Part shown: piece by piece, positions 6,230 to 31,880 of the stretch
Position numbering within the stretch: position 1 is the first letter of the stretch
Layout of the letters: every line of letters begins with the position of its first letter
DNA from: Octopus bimaculoides
Lineage: Eukaryota
Assembly: GCF_001194135.2 (NCBI RefSeq)
Contig: NC_069008.1
Location: forward strand, 2,725,021-2,764,396
Length of the DNA stretch: 39,376 nt
Direction: 5' to 3'
Made by a program: the position numbers and the translations under genes
Notes under the pieces: generated by a model
Databases searched by the model: none
What the model was told of the DNA's origin: nothing
Seen by the model: the letters and a program-made list of their open reading frames with translations, nothing else

Positions 6230-6276
6230 TTATTTCAGGTGGATATATATGTTCAAGAAGTCAATCAGTCCATATC
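6230..6276 (-). CDS. Same gene, probable terminal coding exon (xYGLIDFLNIYIHLK-stop)
   Basis: Acceptor gtttgttgttatttttcag|. Phase-1 reading ends at TAA 6232-6230, overlapped by AATAAA and followed by AT-rich UTR-like sequence. This frame needs an unseen phase 2 to phase 1 exon upstream. Confidence 0.55.
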
Positions 6277-6477
6277 CTGAAAAATAACAACAAACATCCC
6301 AGTTACAACAATAAGAGTAACACGATCAAAAGCAGTAAGGACAACTACATTAGCAACAACAACAATACGAAAATGTTCATATTAATTTGTAACATATTTC
6401 GGCAGATTTGAACATGAATTTGATAATCGCTATTGCAGTGCACCTTTCGAAAACAACCTAAACCTTCTGACGACATA

Positions 6478-6798
6478 CTCTTTTACTCTTTTACTTGTTT
6501 CAGTCATTTGACTGCGGCCATGCTGGAGCACCGCCTTTAGTCGAGCAAATCGACCCCGGGACTTATTCTTTGGAAGCCTAGTACTTATTCTATCGGTCTC
6601 TTTTTGCCGAACCGCTAAGTGACGGGGACATAAACACACCAGCATCGGTTGTCGAGCAATGCTGGGGGGACAAACACAGACACACAAACACACACATATA
6701 TACGACGGGCTTCTTTCAGTTTCCGTCTACCAAATCCACTCAGAAGGCTTTGGTCGGCCCGAGGCTATAGTAGAAGACACTTGCCCAAGGTGCCACGC
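6478..6798 (-). mobile_element. SINE family A (abundant octopus-type SINE); head lost in gap
   Basis: Homologous to 22828-23040 and 34783-35042; tail cagtcaaatgactgaaacaagtaaaaga. Confidence 0.85.
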
Positions 6799-7522
6799 NN
6801 NNNNNNNNNNNNNNNNNNNNNNNNNNNNNNNNNNNNNNNNNNNNNNNNNNNNNNNNNNNNNNNNNNNNNNNNNNNNNNNNNNNNNNNNNNNNNNNNNNNN
6901 NNNNNNNNNNNNNNNNNNNNNNNNNNNNNNNNNNNNNNNNNNNNNNNNNNNNNNNNNNNNNNNNNNNNNNNNNNNNNNNNNNNNNNNNNNNNNNNNNNNN
7001 NNNNNNNNNNNNNNNNNNNNNNNNNNNNNNNNNNNNNNNNNNNNNNNNNNNNNNNNNNNNNNNNNNNNNNNNNNNNNNNNNNNNNNNNNNNNNNNNNNNN
7101 NNNNNNNNNNNNNNNNNNNNNNNNNNNNNNNNNNNNNNNNNNNNNNNNNNNNNNNNNNNNNNNNNNNNNNNNNNNNNNNNNNNNNNNNNNNNNNNNNNNN
7201 NNNNNNNNNNNNNNNNNNNNNNNNNNNNNNNNNNNNNNNNNNNNNNNNNNNNNNNNNNNNNNNNNNNNNNNNNNNNNNNNNNNNNNNNNNNNNNNNNNNN
7301 NNNNNNNNNNNNNNNNNNNNNNNNNNNNNNNNNNNNNNNNNNNNNNNNNNNNNNNNNNNNNNNNNNNNNNNNNNNNNNNNNNNNNNNNNNNNNNNNNNNN
7401 NNNNNNNNNNNNNNNNNNNNNNNNNNNNNNNNNNNNNNNNNNNNNNNNNNNNNNNNNNNNNNNNNNNNNNNNNNNNNNNNNNNNNNNNNNNNNNNNNNNN
7501 NNNNNNNNNNNNNNNNNNNNNN
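6799..7522. other. 724-nt assembly gap inside the gene; candidate location of a missing exon
   Basis: N run. It is the only unsequenced stretch between exon 13104 and exon 6276. Confidence 0.9.
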
Positions 7523-7645
7523 CGATTAAGCTGTTGGAACGACACCTTATTCTATCGACCGACGTTGATCGTATCATATTTGAAACTAGGTTAAGACATG
7601 GTAGAAATACTGCATGTGGAATTCTTCTGTCAGACTACCCCGTCA

Positions 7646-7771
7646 ATGATGATGATGATGATGATGATGATGGTGGTGGGGGGGGGAGGGGTTAGGGTTG
7701 TGTGGTGACGAAGAAGATGATGATGACGATGATGACGACGACTGCTACGACGATTATGTTGATGGTGATGG

Positions 7772-7803
<32 letters not shown>

Positions 7804-7852
7804 GTGATGATGGTGATGGTGATGATGATGATGATGATGATGATAATGATGA
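7646..7852. repeat. (GAT/GGT)n trinucleotide microsatellite
   Basis: Direct reading; source of the poly-D/M/H ORFs. Confidence 0.95.
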
Positions 7853-7854
7853 AG

Positions 7855-10578
7855 ACAGACATTTCCATGGAATTTGGCAGAGGTGAACCTAGTGAAGAGC
7901 AATTACATAATCGAATGGATGAAAGGCAAAGAGAAGAACTTTTTGGTTGACACTGAAAAAGATGCTTGAATATAGAGAGGAGAGAATTGTTAAATGGAAA
8001 AGAAGAAGAAACCGAAATAGCAAAAGAAATTGTGGAACGGATGATAAAGAAGGAAGGGCTATCAAATTTGAAGAACGTAGATAGGACAAAAATTGGGGGA
8101 TGGCGAGCGAGAGAAGTCAAGAAAGTCAAAGGCTGCATAGAAACCGCTGACATCGCTTAGACGAAAGAGTTGCTCAAAACAGCTGCATGTGTAACTACTA
8201 AACATCTCAGACTAAAAAAAAATCAGAATAAAAGGACACAAAAAAAGAACCATGGTGGAGAAAGGGAATGGTTAAAGAGTTTGCAGAACTGGGAAAAGAT
8301 AGGAATAGGTTGGTGAAACAATGTTGTTGGCACTCTGTCGCTTACGACGTCGCGGGTTCCAGTTGATCCGATCAACGGAACAGCCTGCTCGTGAAATTAA
8401 CGTGCAAGTGGCTGAGCACTCCACAGACACGTGTACCCTTAACGTAGTTCTCGGGGATATTCAGCATAACACACTGTGACAAAGCTGACCCTTTGAATTA
8501 CAGGCACAACAGAAACAGGAAGTAAGAGTGAGAGAAAGTTGTGGTGAAAGAGTACAGCAGGGTTCGCCACCATCCTCTGCCAGAGCCTCGTGGAGCTTTA
8601 GGTGTTTTCGCTCATTAAACACTCACAATGCCCGGTCTGGGAATCGAAACCGCGATCCTATGACCGCGAGTCCGCTGCTCTAACCACTGGGCCATTGCAC
8701 CTCCACGGTGAAACAACGAACAACAGAATAAATGAACAACAGAAGATGAATATTTCAGGGAGATGGTGTCTCACCACTCTTGTTTGGGAAATAACGAACT
8801 GCGGAATATTTGAATTAAAGATCAAATTGGAAACTGCGCAGACAAGAAATTGAAGTTGTGATTGAAGAGGATCAAACAAAGAATGACTGAAAAGTCAGGA
8901 AAGCTAGCAAAACATCACGGACGTACAGAACAACGGAATGTTCCAGACGAATCGGATAAAATTCGTCGAAAGGTTTGAGAAAGAAATTCAAGACAATGGT
9001 GTTATACAGAATAGGGGAGACTGTGTACCGTTTTGGAGTGGGATCTGGGATCGATCAGTTGTACATAATGATGAAGCTAATTGGATGGGAAAGTTGAAAT
9101 GAAGATGAAAGGTAAAAACAGACAAGAAAACATCACAATATCACAGACAGCAATGGAGAAACGAATTTTAAAAAATGATAAACTGGAAACCACCAGGTTC
9201 CGATGGATTGCAAGAATATTGGATTAAAGTATTTAGGATATGACATTTGAGAATTGGAAGCCAATTTTAAGAATTTCTGAATGGCGGGTGGGGACTGTTC
9301 CACTGTGGAATATTAATCTAGAGAGACGTGCCAAAAGGCAATGAAGTATCAAACTATCGACCAAAAATATATTTACCAACCATGTAGACGGGAGTAAAAG
9401 CTGACGAACGGTAAAATTTTGGAATGAGGCAATGTTATTACCAAATGGGCAGAAGGGTTGTAAACACAGGTCGAGGGGGACAAAAGAGCAAGTGTTAATA
9501 GACAACATGATACTAAAGATAGATAAAAAAAAAAGGGGGGCTGTGATATGATGCTTCATAGGTGGACAGGGAAAAGTATTGAGATATTTGGAGTGGCAGA
9601 GAATGTACAAAAATTGCTAAGAGAAAATCTGACAATCTAGAAAACGGAGTTTACATCTGGAGGAAAGTCAGTGAGTACAGTGAACAACAGAAGAGGAATA
9701 TTTCAGGGAGATGGTCTCTCACCACTCTTGTTTGTGATGATATTAATACTTCTGTCGATTGTACTGAGAGTTGCTAAAGCAGGATATGATTTCGGAAATG
9801 AATTGGGAATGGTTAATGGCGATTTAAAGCTTTATAGGGAAAATAAAGATCATCTTGGTACACAAGTGGACAGAGAAAGAATTGTTAGTAATGACACAGG
9901 CATGGAATATGGAATCAATAAATGTGTCATTTTGATACTGAAATAAAGCAGATTCGAGAACTTAAATTGCCAAATAATCAGATAATGGAAAGCTTAGAAG
10001 GAAATCAAAGATATAAGTATTTGGGAATCTTGGAATCAGATATAATCGAAAACAGAGAAATGAAGGAAACCATTTCAAAAGAATATTTTCCAAGGGTCAA
10101 ATTGATCTCATTTAAATTCTGGAAACATTGTAAAGGCAATAAATTCAAGGGCTGTATCGATTGTGGGGTATGTGGCAGGCCTTGTGAATTGGAACAAAGA
10201 AAAACTGTAAGATATTGATCAAACACTCGGAAAATACTGTGTACAAGGCTTTACATAAAAGGACAAATATGGACAGGTAGTACATGAAACGTAAAAAAGG
10301 GGAAAAGGGGATTGATTAGTGTGGGAGATTGTGTGAATATGGAAATGAAGTCTCAATCAGCATTTTAGCCAGAGTACTGAAGAATTGCTAGCAGTAGTAA
10401 GCAATGCAGACATATTAGGAGAAGGACAAACAAAAGATGAAGTCCTTGAAAAGAGAAAGCGAGATATTATGGAAAAGAAAACCAACAACATTTACACTTC
10501 TATTTATAAAGAATATTGAAACAGGAAGAGGCGAAGTCACTTGGAATTGGTTAGGAGAGGGAATTCTCACAAAAATGT
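7855..10578 (+). mobile_element. R4/Dong-clade non-LTR retrotransposon, degenerate, 3' part missing from this orientation
   Basis: RGIFQGDGLSPLLF, DLKLY, GMEYGINKC and YKYLGILE RT motifs, with many stops and frameshifts. Confidence 0.85.
8322..8706 (-). mobile_element. Full-length tRNA-derived SINE family B with 10-bp TSD
   Basis: Head gtggag..caatggcccagtggttag (A box) and ggtttcgattccc (B box); (caa)n tail; TSD ggtgaaacaa at 8312-8321 and 8707-8716. Confidence 0.9.
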
Positions 10579-10740
10579 TTTCTTTTGTATCTCACACCTA
10601 TGATGGAATTTAGGTGAGTTTCCTCTTGGTTCGCCAAATCAATATCTGCAACTTAAAAATAATTCAACACCTCCAAAAGGAGAATCTAGGTGTATGATTA
10701 CAAATATTAAGTAGGCGTGGCTATGTGGTAAGAAGCCTGT

Positions 10741-11590
10741 GACTTCGGCCATCCGAGCCCTTTCGATTGTTTTTCCGCCGTTGTATGTATTTAACAATCC
10801 AACCTTTTCTGTCCACTCCTCGATCCTCTTACCTGTTGTTCCTAAGGCTCCTATGACAATCGATCTTTAGATTGTTTAGATAAAATTATTCCATGTGTTC
10901 CAACGACCATCTTCCACTACTGTTTCATCGGGAGTTGAGCGCCCAGGAAAGAAAATAGTGGTACGATCTCACTTTTCTACAACCCCACAATCTGCTTATT
11001 TCCCTCTTCATGTCCTGGTATATATCGAACTTGTTGACTTCTTTCTTGTATCAAATGAACCAGCTACATCAATTATATAGCAAAAGCGCTCCCTTTTCTC
11101 AAGAACTCAGACATCTGGTTTGTTATATACTAGGATCTGTTTGGATAGGAAAGTCTGAAAGAAGTTTAACCTCATCATTCTCAGCCACGTCTTCGGGTAC
11201 ATGTTTATACCACTTGTATACTTCTTACACATTTCCTAGTGGTTGATCTCTGCAACATAATCATGTCTCCAAAACTTTTACTGTTTCTCTGCGAGTTTGG
11301 GACATTCACTTATTATGTGGGTTCACTACTTCTTCTCGTTCATCTCACAACCTGAACACATTGACACCTGCTCTGCAGTTTGCACTATCTATCCCAAGAA
11401 CTTCATCCTAAGATGCCAGGATTAATCCTTCTGTCGCCCATTTTTGTGAGAATTCCCTCTCCCAACCAATTCCAAGTGACTTCGCCTCTTCCCGTTTCAA
11501 TATTCTTCATAAATGGAAGTGTAAATGTTGTTGGGATTTTTTTCCATAACATCTTGCTCCCGGCAACTCCCTGCTTAATTAATTAACTAA
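10741..11590 (-). mobile_element. R4/Dong LINE 3' segment (CCHC/RHD and restriction-like endonuclease region), inverted
   Basis: Minus-strand remnants of C-x2-C, RHD-like and VIGALG motifs. 11439-11534 is 92/96 identical to the reverse complement of 10482-10577. Confidence 0.8.
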
Positions 11591-11679
11591 TCTTGTGTAT
11601 GTATGTTTGATGCACAGGCAGTTAGAGGATCCCTGCTTACGAAAAATATTTAGGTCGACCGAGTAGATCATAATTCTGT

Positions 11680-12430
11680 GGTCTGTGCAGCAAACGATCT
11701 TAAAGTATGGACAAACAACGCTCTAGCCAGATACGATCGCGATGGCCCGATTCGGTGTGTCCATATCCGCATTGTTAGATTCGGAAAATTCACTCGGTGC
11801 CTATCAAAGCCATCGGAAGAATCTGAACAGGTTTGTGTGACTTTTACAACCCCGACGAATATTTTCAGCAAAAGAATAAGTTTAAGACCACATGGTTGCA
11901 CCCTGCATCTAAAGAATGGCATATTCTGGATTACATCCTTGTTAGAGTGCGTGACACGAGGGGACAGCTACTTTTGAGAAATCTCGAGTTGCGCATGAGA
12001 AAGTAAAGAGGGATGTCAGGAAGGGCATCGCTGTTGCACTTCCAGAAGGTAAGGGTCTTCCTATGACGCTGACATGCAGTGTCCGTGCAAGACCCTGCCT
12101 CAGTAAAGCTGGACTCAAGAGTCGTCTTCGTAGTCATAAAGCGAGACCGGTGATACACAACCAGGCCGCTGGTGGTGGTGCTACACACCATACTAATCAT
12201 ACCTGTCAGGCATGCGGAAGGGAGTGTGATTCGGCGGGAGGACTTAAACGGCATGCAAAGATACATGAAGCCCAGTTACAACCACAGCCGGCTGTTGCCG
12301 GTAAAGGTTTTAGCTGCCAATTCTGTACGAGACATTGTAGATCTTTGGCTGGGCTAAAAAGTCACATTCGATCACAGCACCGATAACAGTTAAGCCTCGT
12401 GCGATGGCCATACTCGAGAACAAGGGGGCA
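11680..12430 (+). mobile_element. Internally deleted RTE-clade LINE: APE remnant joined to the C-terminus with three C2H2-like fingers
   Basis: KNKFKTTWLHPASKEWHILDYILVR (end of APE) joins directly to GTATFEKSR...CSVRARPCLSKAGLKSRLRSH, CQACGRECDSAGGLKRHAKIH, CQFCTRHCRSLAGLKSHIRSQH-stop; (ATGT)n tail. Confidence 0.8.
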
Positions 12431-12436
12431 GTCATC

Positions 12437-12467
12437 ATGTGTACATGTATGTATATATGTATGTATG

Positions 12468-12500
<33 letters not shown>

Positions 12501-12577
12501 TTGTGTCTATGTATGTATTATGTATGCATGTATGTTTGTGTCTATGTATGTTTGTGTCTATGTATGTATGTTTGTAT

Positions 12578-12653
<76 letters not shown>

Positions 12654-12810
12654 GTATGTATACATGCATATGTGTATGAATGGATGGATGGATGGATGGA
12701 TGTCTGCATGTGTGTGTGTATGTATGCTTGTATGTTGGTATGTATGTATGCATATATGTATGTATGTATGTGTGTATGCATATATGTATTAATGCATATA
12801 TGCCTGTATG
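12437..12810. repeat. (ATGT)n/(TA)n/(ATGG)n compound microsatellite
   Basis: Direct reading. Confidence 0.95.
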
Positions 12811-13103
12811 TATGTATTCTAAAACACTGCCGTTTATGAGCGCATAAACAAGTGAATCAGTTCAGTCCGTGTCCGCTTCATAAAATTATCTTCCACAGAA
12901 TGATGTAAGGCGAGCTTGACTTTGATTATAATAATAACAGGGATCTTTGATTATATTAATAACAGGGATCTTTGATTATAATAATAACGGAAATTAATTA
13001 CTCTAGATATAATTTATTGCCTGCAGATGATTAAAAGCATGTTGATTCCAGGATGTAAATGAACACAAACTATATAACATAAAAGTAATGAAAAATAGCT
13101 TAC

Positions 13104-13267
13104 TTATTTCCATGAACTGAAAACATATTAAAGTTGGTTGCGTTTAGATCAGTCCATGGGGAACTTATTAGTCTTGCATACTGAAACCAGTTATCGATGG
13201 TTGAATTACGTCCATCAAACAACAACGTTATAGCTTTCGCACCAAATTTGAGAGCTTCAAATTTCAC
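13104..13267 (-). CDS. Same gene, third coding exon (164 nt, phase 0 to phase 2)
   Basis: Acceptor tttcataatttcttag|, donor AATAA|GTAAGC. Reads VKFEALKFGAKAITLLFDGRNSTIDNWFQYARLISSPWTDLNATNFNMFSVHGN, with two N-glycosylation sequons (NST, NAT). Not in the ORF track because it has no ATG. Confidence 0.85.
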
Positions 13268-13377
13268 CTAAGAAATTATGAAATTGAGATACATAATTAT
13301 ATGTATAAGCATATTGTATGTGTAAGCATATATACAAACATACATTCGTACTTATATATATATATATATATATATAC

Positions 13378-13420
<43 letters not shown>

Positions 13421-13498
13421 AAGAGGGAGAGAGAGAGAGCGAAGTTTCATTGTTATAGCTACTCAGAGAGAAAATTCCAGGTTTGCAACTGGAAACGT

Positions 13499-13906
13499 CT
13501 CTGATGAGAACATTGACTAAACACTTCTTTCCCGGAGTTTAAAAAGGTCCCTGGGTCAAGCGAACTCTTAAGGATTCTTGCTCTCTCTCCTCTACCAAGT
13601 AAAGCATACGTCGTTTGCTCCCGTTGATATATATTTCCGCCTGTTCAGGGAGCTTCTATTTAATTATGTATGGCATGCTCTCCACTTTTAGGCGCCATAC
13701 GTGGCTGTCCAGGGAAGTGATGTTGCTCCTCCCCAATGTTGCTTAAAGTAGCTGCCCGCGGAACCGAGATATTTCCGTGTCTATACGCTGGATTTTTTAC
13801 AGCCGCTATTGTTTCCTTCGGGACCAGAGTTGACGAAAAATTCGCTTGACCCGGGGTCCTTTTTAAACTCCAGGAAAGAAATGTTTAGCTAATGTCTTCA
13901 TCAGAG
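13499..13906. repeat. Fold-back element with about 66-bp imperfect inverted arms
   Basis: 13499-13564 is an imperfect reverse complement of 13841-13906 (ctctgatga...tttaaaa.gg.ccc.gggtcaagcgaa). Confidence 0.8.
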
Positions 13907-14989
13907 ATATCTTTTGTTATAAGCTTGGAATTCCCCATTCGCCGATTAGAACCACGCCACCAACATCGTAAACCGTCCTCTAGTTGTAGAGAAGTTATGT
14001 GCCTCCAGCCATTTGTGTCTCACAAGTAACCTATACAGCTAAACGTTTTATAAGAACGAAACCAATGGTCACGCTCCATAACAATGGTCACCGGCCATAA
14101 CAATCAACCTTCTAGAAATATATTGCTGTTCTAATGTTTAAGAGTGTGTTTTTTGGAGTATCTATTGCTATGATCCAAATAAGCATAATAGGGAAACACT
14201 CGTAGGAATTTTAATAAAATTTCTATTCTTATGAGAGACATAGGTAGAGAATTAGAGAGATATTAATGCCTTAATTATCGGAATTATTATTCTGTTTTAT
14301 AATTGGTGCACCAGCATGACCGCAGCCACTTGGCTGAAACTCATAAATAAATAAATAAATAAATAGGTGCGGCGACCTTGTCTTCAGAGATAAGTAAAAC
14401 TACTTGTTATTGTTTTTGCTGTTGTTGCTTTTGTAGATATTTTCATTCCAGTTTCGATAAAACATACAAATATACACAATGCAGTATGCTTATGTATATA
14501 TTTATATATATATATATAGACGCGGCGTCTATACCATGTTTTATGATTTCATTAAGGGCAGCCGGCATGGCATAGAAGGGGACTCTATAACGGCATGACG
14601 TTTTAATGGAATGAATATCAGTGAAAAGTCGAGGTTCGACTTATATGAATTGTGTGTGTCATTGTCACTACAAAACAATTATTTTTAAAATTATTAAAAT
14701 CTTTTGGTATTTAGTTGCGTTACGTTCTGAATTACAATTCAGTTAGATTTAACTTCTTTCAGATTTCTAAAATCCATTGATATACGTATCAATGAAATAC
14801 TAGTACATAATTAATGACTTGTAGGTACACCGTATTTCGTTGTGCAACCATAATGTACTACGAAATATATTAAACGCTTTTATAAGTCAATACTGTGTTC
14901 CTAGCAGTGCTGATGAAGGACCAAGAACTCAAAACATGGCATATACACCCATTACCCATCGTTGTTTACATTAGACATACTCGGATAGG

Positions 14990-15390
14990 GTGGAGACGCA
15001 ATGGCCCAGTGGTTAGGGCAGCGAACTAGCGGCCATAGGATCGAGGTTTCGATTCCCAGACCTGGCGTTGTGAGTGTTTATTGAGCGAAAGACACCTAAA
15101 GCCCCACGAGGCTCCGGCAGGGCGATGGTGGCGAACCCTGCTGTACTCTTTCGCCACCACTTTCTCCCACTCTTACTTCCTGTTTCTGTTGTGCTTGTAA
15201 TTCAAAAGGGTCAGCCTTGTCACACTCTGTGTCACGCTGAATATCCCCCGAGAACTACGTTCAGGGTACACGTGTCTGTGGAGTGCTCAGCCACTTGCAC
15301 GTTAATTTCACGAGCAGGCTGTTCCGTTGATCGGATCGACTGGAACCCTCGTCGTCGTATGCGACGGAGTGCCAACAACAACAATAACAA
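14990..15390 (+). mobile_element. Full-length SINE family B
   Basis: A and B boxes, (caa)n tail, TSD ctcggatagg / ctcagatagg. Confidence 0.9.
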
Positions 15391-15743
15391 CTCAGATAGG
15401 AAACGTCATAACAAATCAATGTTAGCTATAATTTCTTTAGAAAAATCTGTAGAGATAACCTTAACAAGTGCATCTGTTCAATTTTGTTGACTGCTCTAAN
15501 NNNNNNNNNNNNNNNNNNNNNNNNNNNNNNNNNNNNNNNNNNNNNNNNNNNNNNNNNNNNNNNNNNNNNNNNNNNNNNNNNNNNNNNNNNNNNNNNNNNN
15601 NNNNNNNNNNNNNNNNNNNNNNNNNNNNNNNNNNNNNNNNNNNNNNNNNNNNNNNNNNNNNNNNNNNNNNNNNNNNNNNNNNNNNNNNNNNNNNNNNNNN
15701 NNNNNNNNNNNNNNNNNNNNNTTGTGTGTATGTGTGTACATAC

Positions 15744-15901
15744 CTTATCGATCGGAAGGTAGTTCCATGAGTCAATGAGTTTATTCCGGTAGGCGTATCT
15801 GTCTGTATTCCATGCTGAATGTGGACCTATTTTGAGGAAGAATTTATAAATATCCACTCGCGACTGCATGTCTACTCTATAGGCTTTTCGCCATGTATCA
15901 G
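15744..15901 (-). CDS. Same gene, second coding exon (158 nt, phase 1 to phase 0)
   Basis: Acceptor cttttatatttcag|, donor AAG|GTATGT. Reads (A)DTWRKAYRVDMQSRVDIYKFFLKIGPHSAWNTDRYAYRNKLIDSWNYLPIDK, in frame with both neighbouring exons. Confidence 0.85.
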
Positions 15902-15934
15902 CTGAAATATAAAAGATATTAGTTTCAAATTTTG

Positions 15935-16490
15935 AAATTTTGGCCAGCAATTTCGTGCGGAGGGTTTAAGTCGATTACATCGACCCCAATGCTCAACTGG
16001 TACTTATTTTACCGACCCCGAAAGGACGAAAGGAAAAGTCGACCTCGGCGGAATTTGAACTAAGAACGTAAAGAGACGGACGAAATGCTGCTAAGCATTT
16101 TGCGAGTTCTGTGCCTTATGAGATATAGGAATTATTAATGATAATAATATAATTATTAAAAATATAATTATAATTAGGCACAAGGTCAAGAGTTTTGAGG
16201 GAAAGAGTTTAGCCGTTACAGTTGACCCTAATACTTCACTTTTACCTTACTTTATCGTACCCAGAGGGATGAAAGGCAAAGTGGACACCTATGGGATTTG
16301 AACTTAGGTTGTAAAGAACAGAGACAATTAACTCAAGGAATTATCAGACATTCTATCAATTCTGCCTGCTCACCACCTGAATAATTTTGGCCCCAAGGCC
16401 AGCGGTTTACAGGTAGGGGTAATTCGATTATATCGAACCCAGTATTCAACTGGTACTTATTTCATCGAACTCGAAAGGGTGAAATAACTT
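15935..16490 (+). mobile_element. Three adjacent copies or fragments of SINE-like family C
   Basis: Recurrent gattacatcgacccc..t..caactggtactta...cgaaagga.gaaagg.aaagtcgac, also at 20085-20272 and 35050-35225. Confidence 0.75.
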
Positions 16491-17888
16491 TGAAGACATC
16501 CCTGCCATGGAAGAAGTTAAAGACCTCTGGAAAGATATCTGGAGAGATGGAAAGTCTTACAATGAAAATGCTGACTGGATTAGACGCACAGAAGGACCCT
16601 ACCAAAGTTTACAAGAACAAGGATGGGAAGACATCACAATAGCAGACCTAAGAATGACACTCACGATGGCTAATAATTGGAAATCCCCTGGTAATGATTG
16701 CGCGCCGAATTTTTGGTTCGGCTCACTCCTGTGCGCACGTGGAATGTTAGTCCAGTTATTCAATGAAATTATGAGAGATTCTACGAAAACATCTGATTGG
16801 TTAGCAAGAGGTATTACTTACCTACTCCAGAAGAAAAATGTAACTAAATCTCTCCAAAACTATCGGCCCATAACATGTCTGTCTACCACGTATAACATTT
16901 TAACGTGCATCCTCGTGGAGAAAACATACAAGTTTATGGAACAGAACGATATTTTTAACCCACTGAACAAAAGGGGTGCCGACGAGGCTCATATGGATGC
17001 AAAGACCAACTCTTAATCAATCGCATGATCTTTGAGAAACGCAGGAATCTCAGTTCTGCATGGATTGATTACAAAAAGGCCTTCGACGGCATACCGCATT
17101 CATGGATCTTGAAATCGCTGGATATCGTCCAAATTTCTCCTGTGATTTCAAACTCCCTGAAGTACAACATGTCAATGTGGAATACGAATCTTCAACTATA
17201 TTATTCTAAGAGTGTACTGACCACAAAAAATTTTAATATCAACTGCGGCATTTTCCAAGGTAATTCACGTTCACCTTTAATTTTATGGAAAGCCCTAATA
17301 TTCCTTAGAAGTGAACTTAACAGAACAGGATATGGAAATAAAATTAGCGACAAGAAAATAAGTCATCAATAGTATATGGTTGACTTAAAACTCTATGGCA
17401 AAGACGATAATGAGCTTGAAGGATTACTACGTACTGTGAAAGCATTCAGTGATGACATTGGGATGGAATTTGGTCTTGATAAATGCGCCAAAACCTCTTT
17501 CCAGAAATGGAAACTGAAGATCTGACATTCAGTGGACTTGGATGTTCACACAGTCATAAAAGAACTCGAGCAGAAATAAACTTACAAACACCTCAGAATA
17601 AATGAGGGTTCTGGCATTCAGCATGGAAGTATGAAAGAAAAGATCAGGAAGAAGTATTAGAGAAGAGTTCGAGCAGTCGTAAAATCCGAGTTAAATGCAC
17701 GTAACAAGGTGTTAGCTATAAATTCCTTAGCAGTTCCGGTTGGTATTTACAGTTTCAACGTGTTGAACCTAAATACGAGCGAAAAAAGGAAGATTGACAG
17801 AAAAATCCGTAAGTTGCTGACTTGCAATAAGATGCACCACCCAAAAGGCGGACGCAGATCCTCTTTACCTACCCAGAGCTCAAGGAGA
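16490..17888 (+). mobile_element. R4/Dong LINE RT region, ending in a minisatellite
   Basis: NYRPITCLST, WIDYKKAFDGIPHSWI, GIFQGNSRSPL, (Y)MVDLKLY, IGMEFGLDKCA, IDRKIRKLLT...RSSLPTQ/LYLPRAQG motifs. Confidence 0.9.
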
Positions 17889-18400
17889 TCAAGGCTTGAT
17901 CCAATCGAGGCTTGATCCAGTCGAGGCTTGATCCAATCTAGGCTTGATCCAATCGAGGCTTGATTCAGTCGAGGCTTAATCCAATCGAGGCTTGATCCAA
18001 TCGGGGCTTGATCCAATCGAGGCTTGATCCAATTGAGGCCTGATCCAGTCGAGGCTTGATCCAGTCGAGGCTTGATCCAGTCGAGGCTTGATCCAATCGA
18101 GGCTTGATCCAATCGAGGCTTGATCCAATCTAGGCTTGATCCAATCGAGGCTTGATCCAATCGAGGCTTGATCCAGTCGAGGCTTGATCCAATCTAGGCT
18201 TGATCCAATCGAGGCTTGATTCAGTCGAGGCTTAATCCAATCGAGGCTTGATCCAATCGGGGCTTGATCCAATCGAGGCTTGATCCAATTGAGGCCTGAT
18301 CCAGTCGAGGCTTGATCCAGTCGAGGCTTGATCCAGTCGAGGCTTGATCCAATCGAGGCTTGATCCAATCGAGGCTTGATCCAATCGAGGCTTGATCCAA
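17889..18400 (+). repeat. 512-bp minisatellite: 32 x 16 bp (tcgaggcttgatccaa) arranged as 2 x 256-bp higher-order repeat
   Basis: Variant units (tcta, gattcag, cttaat, tcgggg, ttgaggcc) recur exactly 256 bp apart, e.g. 18001/18257 and 18033/18289. Confidence 0.95.
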
Positions 18401-18409
18401 TATTGGCTT

Positions 18410-19612
18410 CAAAGCTGAATGCCAGAACATAATTTCGGCAATAAACTCACGCGCAGTCGCAGTAGTTTGTTATGGCGCTGGAATAACTGAAGCGGACTGA
18501 GGAGGAGCTAAAAGGGGTAGACAGGAAGTCAAGAAAGCTCCTAACGATTTTGGAGCCCATCATAGACGTGAAGACATTGATCGCCTACACATGAAAAGAG
18601 CAAATGGAGGAAGGTCACTGAGAAGTGTGGAAGACTGCGTACGTATCGAACTGGAGGGCTTCATGAAATACCTAGCCCAAAGTAAGGAAACTTTGCTAGT
18701 GTCAGTTAGGAACGAGGAAGTGTTGAAAGAATAGAAAAAGGAAAAAGGAAGGAAGAAGTACAAGAAGGACACGAAGAAGAATTACGCAACAAGGAACTAC
18801 ACAATCAATTCCATGTAGCCAAAACAGAAGTTGCTGGAAAAGGAACCCTAAAAAAAGAGACCGAAAGCACTATACTGGCAGCACAGGACCAAGCTTTGGC
18901 CACGAACTGGAAGGTCAACCTTAAAAATGATCAAGTGTCTCCGCTGTGTCGCCTCTGCAATAGAGTGGATGAAAGCATTTCCCATATCACAAACGAATGC
19001 CCTAGACTTGCCCAAAACCGCTACAATTTGCGGTGACACGACCAGGTAGCGAAAGTTCTCCATTGGAAACTGTGCGAAAAGTGGGGGTCAGAGAGAGGCA
19101 AGACGTGATATGAGTAGAAACCGCAGAGTGCGGGGAGTCGGAGACTAGCAAAATCCTCTAGGATTTCCCAATCCAAATAGATCGGATACAAGAGAATGAC
19201 AGAGCAGACCTAGCGGTGGTGGACAAGGTGGCCCACATATGCTATATGGTTGATGTTGCTCGCCCCTCTGACACACGAATAGTCAAGAAGGAAGGCGAAA
19301 AAAATAGATATATACAACCCTCTTAAGTATGAAATAACCCGGCTATGGAAAATGAAGAAGGTGAAGATAGTGCCAATCATTGTTGGGTCCTTGGAAACAA
19401 TACCAGAAGGTATCAAGAGGAATATAAAGGAAATCGGAATAGAGTGCCCAGTGGAACTGTTACAAAGGGTTTGCCTCCTTGGCATGCCCAGAATAATCAG
19501 GAAAGTATGAGATAATTGAAAAGAACGGATAGCATGGTAGCGTAGGCTGCAGGTAGCAAACTCGCTATGCATGCAAGACACCAGGAGCTCCAACAAAACC
19601 TGTGATAAAGAG
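18410..19612 (+). mobile_element. Second, divergent R4/Dong LINE: 5'-truncated, with CCHC finger, REL endonuclease and (AAT)n tail
   Basis: AINSRAV...DRKSRKLLT, ILAAQDQALAT, CRLCNRVDESISHITNECPRLAQ..HDQVA, ADLAVVDK, IIVGSLETI, LLGMPRIIRKV; tail at 19613-19748. Confidence 0.9.
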
Positions 19613-19637
19613 AAATAATAATAATAATAATAATAAT

Positions 19638-19688
<51 letters not shown>

Positions 19689-19698
19689 AACGATGATG

Positions 19699-19749
<51 letters not shown>

Positions 19750-19849
19750 GACTCTACCGTCGAAGACGATGCACGAGCATTCAGCTTTTGCCGAGTAACC
19801 TGCACAAATGATTTGTTTGTAATGGTCAAATGTTTGTGCCGCGTATTAG

Positions 19850-20045
19850 CTCACTCTCTCTCTCTCCATCAAATCGACATTGTCTGAACAGGTGTACTGT
19901 ATATGCCACGTGTGTCAGGTATCCAAGTGAAGGTAGAGCTACTGGAGATGAAGTGTTTCGCTCAAGAACACAACGCACCACCTGATGTCGGAAGTGAACC
20001 CACGATCTCATGATCCTGAGTACAACACCCTTACCATTAGGCCAA
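19850..20045 (-). mobile_element. tRNA-derived SINE-like family D
   Basis: Minus strand begins ttggcctaatggtaagggtgttg...gtgggttcacttcc, with A/B-box-like motifs. Confidence 0.6.
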
Positions 20046-20084
20046 TAGCAATAATAATAATAATAATAATAATCCTTTCTATTA

Positions 20085-20272
20085 TAGGCACTAGGCCTGA
20101 AATTAGGGGGAGAGGACTAGTCCATTACATCGACCCCAGTGTTTCACTGGTACCTACTTCATCAACTCCGAAAGGATGAAATGTAAAGACGACTTCGGCG
20201 GAATTTGAATTCAGAGCGTAGCGACGGATGAAACACCGCTAAGCATTTCGTCCGGCGTGCTAACGATTCTAA
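20085..20272 (+). mobile_element. SINE-like family C
   Basis: Homology to 15935-16105. Confidence 0.75.
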
Positions 20273-20290
20273 TAACAATGGTTTACTTAC

Positions 20291-20615
20291 CTTTATAAAA
20301 GGACATTTCGTTGCTGTCCTGTTCATTGGTCAGTTCCACCTTAACACCTTCCAGGTAAGTACTACAAAACTGACTTCTTTTGTTATAAGTGAAGAATGTT
20401 GCTTCACGGTTTAAAGCCTTGAATGCACATTCTGTTACACTTTGAGTTGAATAGGATAGTTGTTTGGAAGACCAGCCAATATCTATACAGGTATAGCCAG
20501 GGCCCAGATATCTGAAGGCGGTTTCCCTCTCTTCAGGGGTAACGATCGCGATATTTACAAGGGTTAAAAGCAACGCCGTAGTCACAGCTGGGCCGGTAAG
20601 AGTAAACTGGAACAT
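20291..20615 (-). CDS. Secreted PAN/Apple-like protein gene, first visible coding exon (signal peptide + PAN-like domain, 108 codons + 1 nt)
   Basis: Acceptor tttctctatttcag| lies 17 nt before the ATG (exon starts 20632), with A at -3. Translation MFQFTLTGPAVTTALLLTLVNIAIVTP...YTCIDIG...SVTECAFKALNREATFFTYNKRSQFCSTY...SFYK. Strong donor AAAG|GTAAGT at 20291/20290, phase 1. Confidence 0.85.
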
Positions 20616-21164
20616 TCTTGTCCTTGGATCTACTGAAATAGAGAAAGGAAGAGATACTGGGAGAGCAATAAGGGAAGATAGCAATGGCTGGTGGTAGAGA
20701 GGGTGGGGTAGATATGTATATAAGGAGATGTAATGAGAAAGAAGAGAGAGAGAGACAGAGAGAAAGGAGAAGGTTGAGAGGAAATGAGGGTCAGCAAACA
20801 AGTAGTGTTAGACGGGTCTCCGTTGTCCAGTTTTACACACCACCATTTGGCATTTTGGGTATCTTTAGCGACAAAGACTATTGGAAGTACTGAGAACAGT
20901 TTCCCAGTGTGAAGACACCATTCTCCTTCCCTCCTGCTAGTCTTAGATGCCCCGCAAATGGTCATAGGCTTTGATATCCCCCTGTTCTTATTTTCATAGC
21001 CCAGATTGATTGATCATTTGATTGATCATCATTGATATATTTTTTTCATAAATGATCGAGATGTCTCTCACGTTACAGATAATCTCGTTCCTATCCTTCA
21101 TAGTAACATCCTGACAGTTTGTCTTTAATCCGTTACCTTTCAAGACAAATATGTCCTTGATTAG

Positions 21165-25972: not shown

Positions 25973-26142
25973 GGTTGTTGGCACTCCGTCGTTTACGACG
26001 ATGAGTGTTCCAATTGATCCGATCAACGGAACAGCCCGCTCGTGAGATTAGCGTGCAAGTGGCTGAGCACTCCACAGACACGTAGTTCTCGGGGATATTC
26101 AGCGTGACACAGTGTGACAAGGCTGGCCCTTTGAAATACAGG
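25973..26142 (-). mobile_element. SINE family B, 3' part
   Basis: Homology to 8322-8500. Confidence 0.85.
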
Positions 26143-26239
26143 TATCTCATACTACTCACAAAACTAGTGAAATATGTTTCCAGGAAATTGCCGAATTACT
26201 ATCAAAAATATTCTGTAATAAGAGTTCCCTTTTTAACAC

Positions 26240-27600
26240 TCGACTTTTTTGCTCAATATGGTGTTCCGGATACCATAGTCTCAGACAATGGAACACAATT
26301 TACAGGATACAAGTTCAAGAAATTCTGCAAAATGCATGCAATCAAGCACATGTTTACCCCACCCTACCATCCGAGGTCAAATGGGCAAGCCGAACGGTTC
26401 ATAGATACTTTCAAGCGAGTGCTAAAACAAGCGAGGAATGAGTTAGGAAATGACAAAGCGCTAAGTTCTTAATGGTGTACAGCAGTGGTTCCCAAACTAT
26501 GAGTCGCGACCCACTGATGGGTCGCGAACGGAATCCTAGTGGGTCGCAAAAAGTTATAAAGTTACGCATTAGCTTTGATTAACTGCTGTCTATGGAGATA
26601 GTTCAAGACTCATGTTTTCAATACCAGACTGGTTGTTTTTATCAAGCAGTAGGCTTTTTTCACGAACTTAACAAATCAGAGGTGGTCATTTTCTCAAGTT
26701 ATTTATACATAACGAAGCAAAAGTTGATGATGGTATAATCATTGAGATATCTGAACACTTGAATAAGCTGAAAGAAAGTTTCGAATTTTATTTTCATGAA
26801 GAGATGAATACTATGCAACAGAAAAGATGGATTACGAACCCCTTTCAATCTGACTTGACGACTGGAATATCAACAAAAGCTGATGAGGAACTTATCGATT
26901 TATCCGAAGACTGTTCCTTGAAAATGATCTTTAACACCCGAAAATTGGTACAGTTCTGGGCATTTCTTCAAACCCCGTACCCAATCATTTCCACCGAAGC
27001 ATTAAAAGTACTTCTCCCTTTCGCCTCATCTTATAATGCTGAAGCTGGATTTTCAGCAATGGTTGGGATTAAAAGCAAATTTCGAAATAAACTGTAGCTC
27101 TCAAATTCTTTATGGCTGAAACTATCACGCATTGAACCTGATGTTAATTCTATTATTGAGCGTAGCAAGAAACAGGCTCATCCTTCTCACAGGCCTCAAT
27201 GAAAATGTAATCTGAAATAAATTTGTTTCTTTCATTAATGTTTTTACCCAGTAGAGTTAATTGGGTCGCCAAAAACTGGTGTCATAGATAGTGGGTTGCA
27301 TCTCTAAAAAGTTTGGGGACCACTGGTGTACAGAATAACGTTCAATCCGAATACCAGCTCAGGCAAGTTGCCTGCAGAGCTAATGTTCGCTCAAAGGATT
27401 AACTCGATCTTCGACAAATTGTTGTCAAAGGAAAAAAGCGTATAGAGAAAATACAAAAATTTCAACTGAACATGTTGATGTCGGAGACAAAGTCCATTTC
27501 AAAGTATACAAGAACGGTAAAGAGAGTTGGCGGGATGGTGTAGTGACTAAAAGAATTGGAAACGATGTATTTAATAAAAGGCCAACAATGGGAGCATGAG
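26240..27600 (+). mobile_element. Ty3/Gypsy integrase remnant split by a hAT element
   Basis: FAQYGVPDTIVSDNGTQF...TPPYHPRSNGQAERF...[insertion]...YRITFNPNTSSGKLPAELMF...WRDGVV. Confidence 0.85.
26483..27325 (+). mobile_element. 843-bp non-autonomous hAT/Buster element with intact TIRs and 8-bp TSD
   Basis: TIRs CAGTGGTTCCCAAACT / CAGTGGTCCCCAAACT; TSD GTGTACAG at 26475-26482 and 27326-27333. Carries only the transposase C-terminus (WITNPF...PFASSYNAEAGFS...QAHPSH). Confidence 0.95.
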
Positions 27601-29199: not shown

Positions 29200-30250
29200 T
29201 TTGTGGATCTTAAAATGTTTTGATGCCCCCGTAAGATTTTGCAAACCTTATAGCATACATAGCATTGAAAATTGTGCGCAGATATAGAGGCAGAATAGTT
29301 GGTGGAGGTTCATGCATCAGCAAATGAGATTTGAGCTCAGCAAAAGAAAAGCATGGTCTGTCACAAACTGCACACAAAAAGGTCCTTGTGATTTACCTTC
29401 TCAATCGTAACATTCTTCTTTAAATCTCTCTTGAGTCTTGCATGGGTTACCCCGGCCTCTTCAAACGCTTTCACTCCACACTCCACACTTTTGTTTGCCA
29501 TCCAGCGCGATCAAAAGTAAAAGTTTCTATGCCCTCTGGATCCATTCCAAGTGACTTCATGGTAGTCCTTCTGCCGTCCTTAAACCTCTTTTTAGATTTT
29601 CACCGATGGCGTTCCCCTTCTGCATGCACACCATAAAACAGCTGTTTATGTGTGCGTTCATCCGCCATTCGAACAGTATGGCCACATCATCTCATTTGGT
29701 TTTCCAAAATCATTGTTTAAATTGACGCCTGCAGACGCAAGGACGTCTGTGTTTGGAGTAAAAGAATTCCATTTAATGTTTAAAATACGATGAAGGCATT
29801 TTTTGTGGAATTGTTCTAACAATTTAATATGCCTTTCATAACATGTCCATGTTTCAGAATACAGCAGAGATGGTAAGACAAATGATTTGTAAAGAGCCAA
29901 TTTTGTGTTGTTATTTATATATCGTTGGCGCCAAACGCGTGACTCCAAACCACCAAATGCTTGTGCTTCCCTTTGAATTTGCAGATGCATTTCTGTGCCC
30001 AGATTCCCATCATTTTGTACAGAGCTTCCAAGGTAGATGAAAGAATCGACAACTTCAAGTAACTTACCCTTAACAAAAAATTTATTGGGGTTGCAAACAG
30101 CACCACATGCAGATTGATGCATTACGACAGTTTTTTTCAAGTTGATGGTCAAGACAAAATCATCACAAGCTGAGTCAAATGCAGATACAAAAGATTGCAG
30201 ACCTGTTTCAGAATGACCTGACTAGATCGCAGTCGTCAGAGAATAAGAGA
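29200..30250 (-). mobile_element. RTE-clade (BovB-like) LINE, RT C-terminal half
   Basis: LLFSDDC, TINLKKTVVM, VDSFIYLGS, TKLALYKSFVLPSLLYSETW, FHKKCLHRILNIKW. Confidence 0.9.
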
Positions 30251-30465: not shown

Positions 30466-31329
30466 NNNNNNNNNNNNNNNNNNNNNNNNNNNNNNNNNNN
30501 NNNNNNNNNNNNNNNNNNNNNNNNNNNNNNNNNNNNNNNNNNNNNNNNNNNNNNNNNNNNNNNNNNNNNNNNNNNNNNNNNNNNNNNNNNNNNNNNNNNN
30601 NNNNNNNNNNNNNNNNNNNNNNNNNNNNNNNNNNNNNNNNNNNNNNNNNNNNNNNNNNNNNNNNNNNNNNNNNNNNNNNNNNNNNNNNNNNNNNNNNNNN
30701 NNNNNNNNNNNNNNNNNNNNNNNNNNNNNNNNNNNNNNNNNNNNNNNNNNNNNNNNNNNNNNNNNNNNNNNNNNNNNNNNNNNNNNNNNNNNNNNNNNNN
30801 NNNNNNNNNNNNNNNNNNNNNNNNNNNNNNNNNNNNNNNNNNNNNNNNNNNNNNNNNNNNNNNNNNNNNNNNNNNNNNNNNNNNNNNNNNNNNNNNNNNN
30901 NNNNNNNNNNNNNNNNNNNNNNNNNNNNNNNNNNNNNNNNNNNNNNNNNNNNNNNNNNNNNNNNNNNNNNNNNTTAAGTAAGCCTGTTTGGTCATTAGAC
31001 CATTCACGGATGCACCTCTGAATTGAATGAAAGAAATCATAATGGTAGATGTTCCCTGCGTTGCTTGATTTATTTGGCGCAATAGTGAACATGCAGAGTC
31101 ATACGCCCACAGAATTATCATCGTTTTCCATTGGGACAATAGGTCGATCTGTAAAAAAAAACCGGCAGTATTTGAGTTTATTTTCCTTACCACATAACTG
31201 CTGACATGTGCTGTTTAGCAGATGGAAAGGTTGAGCCTAAAGATATAACATAAAGAGAAATAGTATTTTTGCCTGCTGTTTCGCTGGGTTGCACATACAA
31301 CATTATCTGAACAAAACATTTGATGAGTG

Positions 31330-31880
31330 GCCTGTGCAGAAAGGATGAAAAATGTAGTATCTGTTGCCTACCTTACAATTGGGGGCACTCAACGGAGAGC
31401 ATACTGTGAAGATTACGCAAATGAAATAAATAAGGTAGCAAGGGTATGGTTACCTGATGTTTTTCCTGTTTGCCGCATAGAGCAACATCCGTTGTTGTCT
31501 TTCCCTTGTAGTCTCCGTACCGCGCGCAGCAGCAGTTGTTGCAGCATCTCTTGTAAGTCGAACTGCGCGTTGTGCTACAGTCTTTGCAGCACGTGAAACA
31601 GCATTTGAGGAAGCATCTCCTGTAAGTCGAACTGCGCGTTGTGCTGCAATCTCTACAGCACGTGAAACAGCAGTAGGGGAAGCCTTTCTTCTTCGGCGTG
31701 CTGAACGTTGCTCGTTGCTCTGGGAGGCTCGTTGCGCAGCAATACGTTGCAACCGATCACAACGCTGCTCTTCACTTTCCCTTCTTCGCGCTGAAGCCAT
31801 CCTAAGTGCATTGAGAGAGCTCCCCCTGGCGGCGTCCTCGGCAGATTCATTTGCACGCACACGTTTACTTTTCTTAGCGA
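31330..31880 (-). mobile_element. Helitron-like ORF remnant with 23-aa STPR-type repeats
   Basis: RESEEQRCDRL, ETTRERQQRM; AQRAVRLT recurs with a 69-nt (23-aa) period at 31552/31621. Confidence 0.55.

Follow-up and report, generated by a model that had tools for sequence, protein, structure and literature searches.

This analysis concerns a 39,376-nucleotide (nt) stretch of the Octopus bimaculoides genome (contig NC_069008.1, positions 2,725,021 to 2,764,396 of the forward strand; the window, numbered from its first letter) and the gene LOC106880665, which lies on its minus strand. In total, the observations outlined here make it probable that LOC106880665 is a genuine, annotated gene of five coding exons, the fourth of which is missing from the assembly, and that it encodes a secreted octopod protein in which a leader is followed by a PAN domain and a fibrinogen-type domain, with the mature part of the protein diversifying. 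The gene itself is already known; what is new is that an assembly gap probably truncates its model and that its mature region is hypervariable.

The coding exons that can be read in the window, and the assembly gaps that lie among them, are as follows.

20291..20615, minus strand: coding exon 1, with the ATG at 20615; codons 1-27 are a hydrophobic leader, and codons ~28-108 are a divergent PAN/Apple-like domain
15744..15901, minus strand: coding exon 2, which opens the C-terminal domain of ~190 amino acids (aa), profile positions 5-76
15500..15721, no strand: assembly gap inside intron 2, beginning 22 nt past the exon 2 donor
13104..13267, minus strand: coding exon 3, covering profile positions 72-125; its GTAAGC donor is in phase 2
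6799..7522, no strand: assembly gap between exon 3 and the terminal exon, the probable site of coding exon 4
6230..6276, minus strand: terminal coding exon 5, with the acceptor AG at 6278-6277 (phase 1) and the TAA stop at 6232-6230

Exons 1 to 3 (20615-20291, 15901-15744, and 13267-13104; 325, 158, and 164 nt) have GT-AG borders, with acceptors that read ...TTTCAG or ...TCTTAG and donors that read GTAAGT, GTATGT, and GTAAGC. Spliced together, they give 647 nt, an open frame of 215 codons plus 2 nt, and the product is 100% identical to the O. bimaculoides “uncharacterized protein” LOC106880665 (216 aa), which UniRef names “Apple domain-containing protein.” The window is part of the GCA_001194135.2 assembly, with identical runs of N, and the coding range of LOC106880665 on CM046628.1 in that assembly corresponds exactly to window positions 20615-13100. 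Residue 216 and the stop of the NCBI model arise from read-through of the exon 3 donor (GGA AAT AA/G TAA, the slash marking the exon border), so that the protein ends in ...GNK. Because homologues of the spliced product reach E 1e-64, a chance origin of the exons can be ruled out. The original prediction of three exons with canonical borders, matching phases, and 215 open codons thus agrees with both the splice borders and the database protein, as does its broader outline of a multiexon gene whose product has a hydrophobic leader at the N terminus, followed by a PAN/Apple-like domain and then by a C-terminal domain for which Pfam has no name. The gene is not hidden, as had been proposed, since NCBI already annotates exactly the same three coding exons. 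The range given in that prediction starts at 6230, which is the last base of the terminal exon’s stop codon.

The leader, residues 1-27 (MFQFTLTGPAVTTALLLTLVNIAIVTP), is hydrophobic; its sequence is conserved among paralogues, as is a hydrophobic stretch at residues 9-25, and the model shows it as a helix of low confidence. Judged by eye, this leader is probably a signal peptide; exon 3 carries N-x-S/T sequons, and the partner domains found in relatives are exclusively extracellular. It counts against secretion that the 17-residue hydrophobic stretch may instead be a signal anchor.

The assignment of the next ~80 residues to the PAN/Apple fold is based on a paralogue, designated P0003 here, that is 46-48% identical to the window protein. 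The N-terminal part of its AlphaFold model superposes on PAN/apple structures with a Foldseek probability of 1.0 and E values of 3e-3 to 4e-2, the matches being the N domain of HGF, plasminogen, the lectin SML-2 of Sarcocystis, MIC4 of Toxoplasma, and a PAN domain of Eimeria. Pfam PAN_1 (PF00024) is found in 22 of 82 members of the family that shares the C-terminal domain, some of them above threshold: P0003 itself scores 13.5 bits against a cutoff of 21.4, and P0054, a relative of the same architecture, scores 38.5 bits. The PAN/Apple fit suggested for the N-terminal part therefore holds through the fold matches of P0003 and the presence of PAN_1 in relatives. The window protein differs from typical PAN/Apple proteins in two respects. 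Its own Pfam search gave no match at E<=10, PAN_1 and Fibrinogen_C included, and it has one conserved pair of cysteines in place of the usual two or three disulfides: C63 and C84 alone are conserved across the octopus paralogues, and C43 is unique to this gene.

Is the mature part of this protein evolving faster than the DNA around it? In Octopus sinensis, the exon-bearing blocks of the window are matched in colinear order, over >15 kb, by the contigs L006 (exons 1-2) and L003 (exons 2-5), and the identities between the two species are as follows.

Exon 1: 78% identical; flanks 91% and 88%
Exon 2: 64% identical; flanks 93% and 91%
Exon 3: 73% identical; flanks 96% and 89%
Exon 5: 80% identical; flanks 91.5% and 90%
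Pooled: exons 74.1% and flanks 90.8% identical (Fisher p 8e-24)

Inside exon 1, the leader is ~95% identical and the remainder is 62-83% identical. Nei-Gojobori estimates of nonsynonymous (dN) and synonymous (dS) divergence between the window and O. sinensis divide along the same line.

Leader: dN 0.017, dS 0.097, ratio 0.18
Mature part: dN 0.396, dS 0.313, ratio 1.27
PAN part: dN 0.411, dS 0.237, ratio 1.73
C-terminal domain part: dN 0.386, dS 0.37, ratio 1.04

Amino acid replacement in the mature part thus runs at ~4 times the intron divergence. In the gene families of conotoxins and snake venom phospholipase A2, the mature product evolves at an accelerated rate, and a hypervariable mature region stands beside a signal peptide and introns that are conserved, as in the octopus gene. 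The octopus product differs in being a folded two-domain protein rather than a small peptide, and the likeness is drawn from the sequences of one species pair.

Several observations weigh against adaptive diversification as the whole account. dN is not significantly above dS; the dS of the mature part is itself ~3 times the intron divergence, so that selection alone is insufficient; and the divergence contrast comes from that one species pair. In addition, the octopus paralogue P0005 is a mosaic: over the 3' two thirds of exon 3 it is near-identical to the window, and in exon 2 it is only ~50% identical. Taken together, the raised dS and this mosaic likeness suggest that exchange among paralogues contributes to the divergence. 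Could the excess in the exons be due entirely to such exchange among divergent paralogues (gene conversion and mosaicism), or to a comparison of nonorthologous copies that happen to have similar introns, with no adaptive component? Besides the dS and P0005, it speaks for this proposal that O. sinensis holds two close copies, P0002/P0186 and P0004+P0164, that are 72-83% identical. However, colinearity and unique intron flanks that are 88-96% identical point to common descent of the whole locus, and a more distant paralogue, at the locus L002, has no alignable intron in common with the window. Both O. sinensis copies are equally distant from the window protein (51-53%), and the leader, which is part of the same exon 1, holds an intron-like rate. 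Conversion and selection can, moreover, coexist. We consider a wholly nonadaptive origin the strongest of the alternatives weighed here, though on balance somewhat improbable. L002 and L004/L005 were considered as a second orthologous pair and rejected, as their matches are confined to exons and repeats.

Adaptive diversification, with or without exchange, concerns a protein that the public model probably represents incompletely. The gap at 15500-15721 costs no coding sequence, because it begins 22 nt past the exon 2 donor and because protein alignments run colinear and unbroken over the exon 2/3 junction in all paralogues. The gap at 6799-7522 (724 N, a length that is only an estimate) is a different matter. 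Relatives of the window product (P0002/P0186, P0003, P0164, P0007, and P0172) run 65-80 residues past its end, and there are five coding exons in the complete paralogues P0003/L002 and P0007/L004 and in the O. sinensis counterpart P0164/L003. Exon 4 of these relatives encodes ...VDRSFxIGYFGDxCxxDRGW...C...; it lies at L003 10149-10317 in O. sinensis (~169 nt, ~56 codons) and is present in all complete paralogues. It was not found in the readable window, either by tblastn with three paralogues at E<=10 or with an unfiltered profile hidden Markov model in all six frames. The single-copy block at 7715-7523 adjoins the gap, and its O. sinensis counterpart lies 736 nt upstream of exon 4; based on this order, exon 4 is expected in or just beyond the 724 N.

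What follows the gap is consistent with this placement. Exon 5 encodes (G)YGLIDFLNIYIHLK and then a stop (the last exon of O. sinensis P0164 encodes GYGLLDYMALYIHLN); it is homologous to the last exons of P0164 and P0003, has a conserved acceptor pyrimidine tract, and matches the last beta-strand of the domain family. Its stop is overlapped by an AATAAA hexamer. The window product (P0001 in our alignments) covers positions 5-125 of the 198-position domain profile and so stops in mid-domain. Since exons 4 and 5 encode 5 of the 12 beta-strands and a nearly invariant Cys...GW...Cys segment, the 216-aa product cannot be the whole domain. In other words, the readable exons hold the terminal strand, in exon 5, and the intervening segment is missing from the assembly. 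We conclude that the NCBI model is probably incomplete, shortened by the gap.

The alternative is that exon 4 has truly been lost or rearranged in O. bimaculoides, and that the gene gives a truncated product of 216-220 aa or is a decaying pseudogene. Some of the data do tell against an intact gene. Exon 4 leaves no trace in any readable frame, and joining exon 3 straight to exon 5 would put the reading out of frame (AA+GATATGG..., read as K I W T D stop). The single-copy anchors between exons 3 and 5 are not fully colinear with O. sinensis, the block at 10960-10875 being out of order, so that rearrangement or true loss is possible, and splicing from exon 3 to 4 to 5 in O. bimaculoides is predicted from the structure of the relatives. 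The NCBI model ends after exon 3, as does the newer model of a second paralogue, LOC106873528, and there is a conserved AATAAA 86 nt into intron 3. Against loss, the 724-N gap lies exactly where the unique block that precedes O. sinensis exon 4 ends; exons 1-3 have neither stops nor frameshifts, and their splice sites are intact; the terminal exon retains its acceptor, phase, and open frame, with 11 of 15 residues in common with O. sinensis; and a domain that ended after 7 of its 12 strands would probably not fold. We judge a loss of exon 4 to be unlikely.

The 3' side of exon 3 has further features of its own. O. sinensis has kept the donor together with its flank, and read-through leads to an in-frame TAA in both species; given the AATAAA at 13018-13013, which is likewise conserved in O. 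sinensis, a short isoform formed through intronic polyadenylation is conceivable. At LOC106873528 (our locus L005), the current model XP_014776404.2 (242 aa) also ends through read-through of the exon 3 donor, and the older model XP_014776404.1 (294 aa) includes exons 4 and 5; truncated models therefore recur in this octopod family. A weak tblastn match to the exon 3/4 region of P0002 at 31067-31231 on the plus strand, directly after an N gap (32% identity, E 0.002), was dropped, as the family profile gives it no support; the similarity is probably due to chance.

What, then, is the C-terminal domain? The module is beta-rich, ~190-200 aa long, and begins at residue ~105. With a profile of 198 positions built from 82 members, the window product matches the family at E 3e-33, and a six-frame scan recovers exon 3 at E 8e-20 and exon 2 at E 1e-8. 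An exhaustive profile search gave 756 cluster representatives at E<=1e-3 and 364 at E<=1e-10. There are 1-4 copies of the module per protein, often at the C terminus, and its partners are ZP, EGF, Sushi, C-type lectin, TSP1, GPS/7TM, and FG-GAP domains. The module spans molluscs (named members from Octopus, Argonauta, Littorina, Pomacea, Elysia, Pecten, and Argopecten), a brachiopod (Lingula), hemichordates (Ptychodera and Saccoglossus), echinoderms (Acanthaster, Anneissia, and Amphiura), and amphioxus (Branchiostoma); it is also found in unnamed metagenome proteins, alongside partner domains of bacterial type. Neither Pfam nor NCBIfam has a model for it (NCBIfam was run on the octopus and Littorina members), and the original description of the domain as one without a Pfam name is thereby upheld for curated libraries. 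The same account likened the domain to one in “uncharacterized” proteins of molluscs and cnidarians: molluscs do have it, together with other marine invertebrates, and cnidarians were absent among the ~35 members whose source was looked up.

Two lines of evidence link the module to fibrinogen-related domains. First, a domain-only model of a Ptychodera member, based on a 21-row alignment that includes octopus sequences, is a confident one, with a predicted local distance difference test score of 88 and a predicted template modelling (TM) score of 0.86, and nearly all of its top 50 fold matches in the PDB are fibrinogen-related domains (ANGPTL3, ficolins, FGL1, angiopoietin-2, fibrinogen beta/gamma, tenascin, and MFAP4), with E values of 0.02-0.4 and TM scores of 0.30-0.39. 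The octopus model (P0003) yields the same fibrinogen-related matches, ranked below its PAN matches. Second, metagenome members supply a bridge in sequence. In P0092, P0127, P0139, and in part P0061, the pattern C..G..SGVY.vDPdg....VyCDMt.dGGGWT stands directly before the module; this element is the NCBIfam “fibrinogen-like YCDxxxxGGGW” domain (127 bits), and its GGGWT strand is the module’s first strand (W-x-L-V-F-K). A profile of complete metagenome modules matches PDB chains of fibrinogen, tachylectin-5A, tenascin, angiopoietin, FIBCD1, intelectin, and the collagen C-propeptide at E values down to 6e-10.

Based on the weak fold matches and this bridge, we see in the module a distant branch of the fibrinogen-related superfamily that has lost the A subdomain in animals and that lies outside the Pfam family itself: the window protein and the octopus paralogues have no match to Fibrinogen_C (PF00147), and 1 of 82 family members does. 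An A subdomain with its Cys pair and YCDM...GGGWT is likewise lacking in octopus and the other animal members, being present only in P0092, P0127, P0139, and partly P0061. In common with ficolins, tachylectin-5, angiopoietins, FGL1, and the fibrinogen-related proteins (FREPs) of molluscs, the module is extracellular, ~200 aa long, and beta-rich; these proteins are its best, though weak, fold matches, its first strand (W-x-L-V-F-K/R) aligns with the GGWTV strand in the metagenome members that bear an A subdomain, and it shares with them a C-terminal place in secreted multidomain recognition proteins. The segment that would correspond to the Ca2+ and acetyl-group binding sites of the fibrinogen-related domains falls to the missing exon 4. 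Intelectins and other X-type lectins offer a second comparison, in that they too have a fibrinogen-like N-terminal segment followed by a divergent remainder, and the metagenome-member profile matches intelectin-1, XEEL, and a serum lectin at E ~1e-9. However, those matches cover just the A subdomain and first strand, a segment that the octopus protein does not have, and the top fold matches of the domain model include no intelectin.

An independent fold, with a likeness to fibrinogen that is convergent or superficial, would account for some of these data. None of the fold matches reaches E<=0.001, with TM scores below 0.4 and root mean square deviations of 8-10 Å; the 82-member profile, run against PDB sequences, gave zero matches at E<=10; Fibrinogen_C is confined to the single member noted above; and the PDB matches of the metagenome profile span just positions ~3-65, that is, the A subdomain and first strand, and end there. 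On the other side, the top 50 matches are drawn almost entirely from one superfamily, a separately built octopus model finds the same ones, and the metagenome GGGWT strand is the domain’s first strand within one continuous module. We also count against independence the late Cys...GW...Cys, which we take to stand at a position comparable to the C...GGWW...C motif of fibrinogen. We doubt, on this evidence, that the fold arose separately.

The module is carried in octopods by several paralogues, in line with the lineage-expanded family that had been proposed. In O. bimaculoides, LOC106873528 (11.88 Mb) and LOC106873068 (14.96 Mb; 296 aa) are on the same chromosome as LOC106880665, and there is also LOC106882098; P0005 and P0011, UniParc identifiers for which no species is given, may be additional copies. 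The O. sinensis counterpart of LOC106880665 shares a contig and an orientation with P0003 and lies ~27 kb upstream of it. The close O. sinensis copies P0002/P0186 and P0004+P0164 (the latter on L006 and L003) come from the same assembly, where one is assigned to a chromosome and the other to unplaced contigs, and may be recent paralogues or very divergent haplotypes. A search of the literature library found no publication on this family.

The introns of LOC106880665 contain repeats, and transposon remnants lie elsewhere in the window.

17025..17372, plus strand: reverse transcriptase fragment in intron 1 (Pfam RVT_1, E 0.0011; sub-threshold, 19.1 bits against a cutoff of 29.6)
17888-18401: 16-nt satellite ATCGAGGCTTGATCCA in intron 1, 32 copies with 92% matches
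20270-20119 and 16103-15966: a ~150-nt element resembling a short interspersed nuclear element (SINE), the first copy directly past the exon 1 donor, the second upstream of exon 2
26104-26472 (plus), 26759-27097 (plus), and 29658-30152 (minus): transposon remnants outside the gene, with an rve integrase core (E 1e-8) and a hAT dimerisation region (E 3e-4, just under the curated cutoff)
31450-31860, minus strand: open reading frame (ORF) of 136 aa, rich in Arg and Ala, with a sub-threshold Pfam STPRs match (E 4e-5, 24.4 bits against a cutoff of 27)

The transposon debris noted between the exons is genuine: the introns hold the reverse transcriptase fragment, sub-threshold as it is, the satellite, and the SINE-like copies. 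The satellite yields long spurious minus-strand ORFs with repeated “LDWIKPRLDQASIGSS” units. The SINE-like element also occurs in tandem runs in an O. sinensis intron (L006 3620-4687 and 6791-7478). One further remnant ORF outside the gene resembles, by eye, the tail of a reverse transcriptase and has no Pfam match.

LOC106880665 belongs to an octopod family of ~290-aa proteins, probably secreted, each consisting of a hydrophobic leader, a divergent PAN/Apple domain, and a ~190-aa beta-rich module that we take to be a remote, A-subdomain-less offshoot of the fibrinogen-related domains. In the model that we propose, the gene would have five coding exons, the fourth most likely inside the N gap at 6799-7522, and the public 216-aa model would end artificially, or as a short isoform, through read-through of the exon 3 donor. 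The protein would be secreted and would have a soluble recognition or binding role, with the PAN and C-terminal domains both predicted to be ligand-binding modules. Positive selection, exchange among paralogues, or the two together would be diversifying its mature part among species and among paralogues, and a pattern of this kind is typical of immune, venom, or reproductive proteins. The structure of the gene, its place in the family, the layout of the domains, and the contrast in divergence of exons and introns are shown by the data; secretion, ligand binding, and the biological role are inferred. Is it possible to go further and see in this family, with its PAN and fibrinogen-derived domains, actively hyperdiversified mature regions, and conserved leader and introns, a cephalopod counterpart of diversified recognition or effector families such as the FREPs of snails or the toxins of cone snails, based on a widespread extracellular domain that still lacks a name in any database? 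We put this forward tentatively, as a possibility that we think the evidence so far leans against.

The more immediate consequences are practical. The LOC106880665 model is probably short by ~70 residues through an assembly gap and is unfit for use as a full-length sequence. The ~190-aa extracellular module is present in hundreds of invertebrate and metagenome proteins and has no curated family model; defining it would aid the annotation of proteins now called “uncharacterized,” among them ZP-domain proteins, adhesion G protein-coupled receptors, and lectin-domain proteins. Finally, the finding of a conserved leader and conserved introns beside a mature part that is hypervariable offers a testable lead to a secreted system of the octopus that evolves rapidly and may be immune, salivary, or reproductive.

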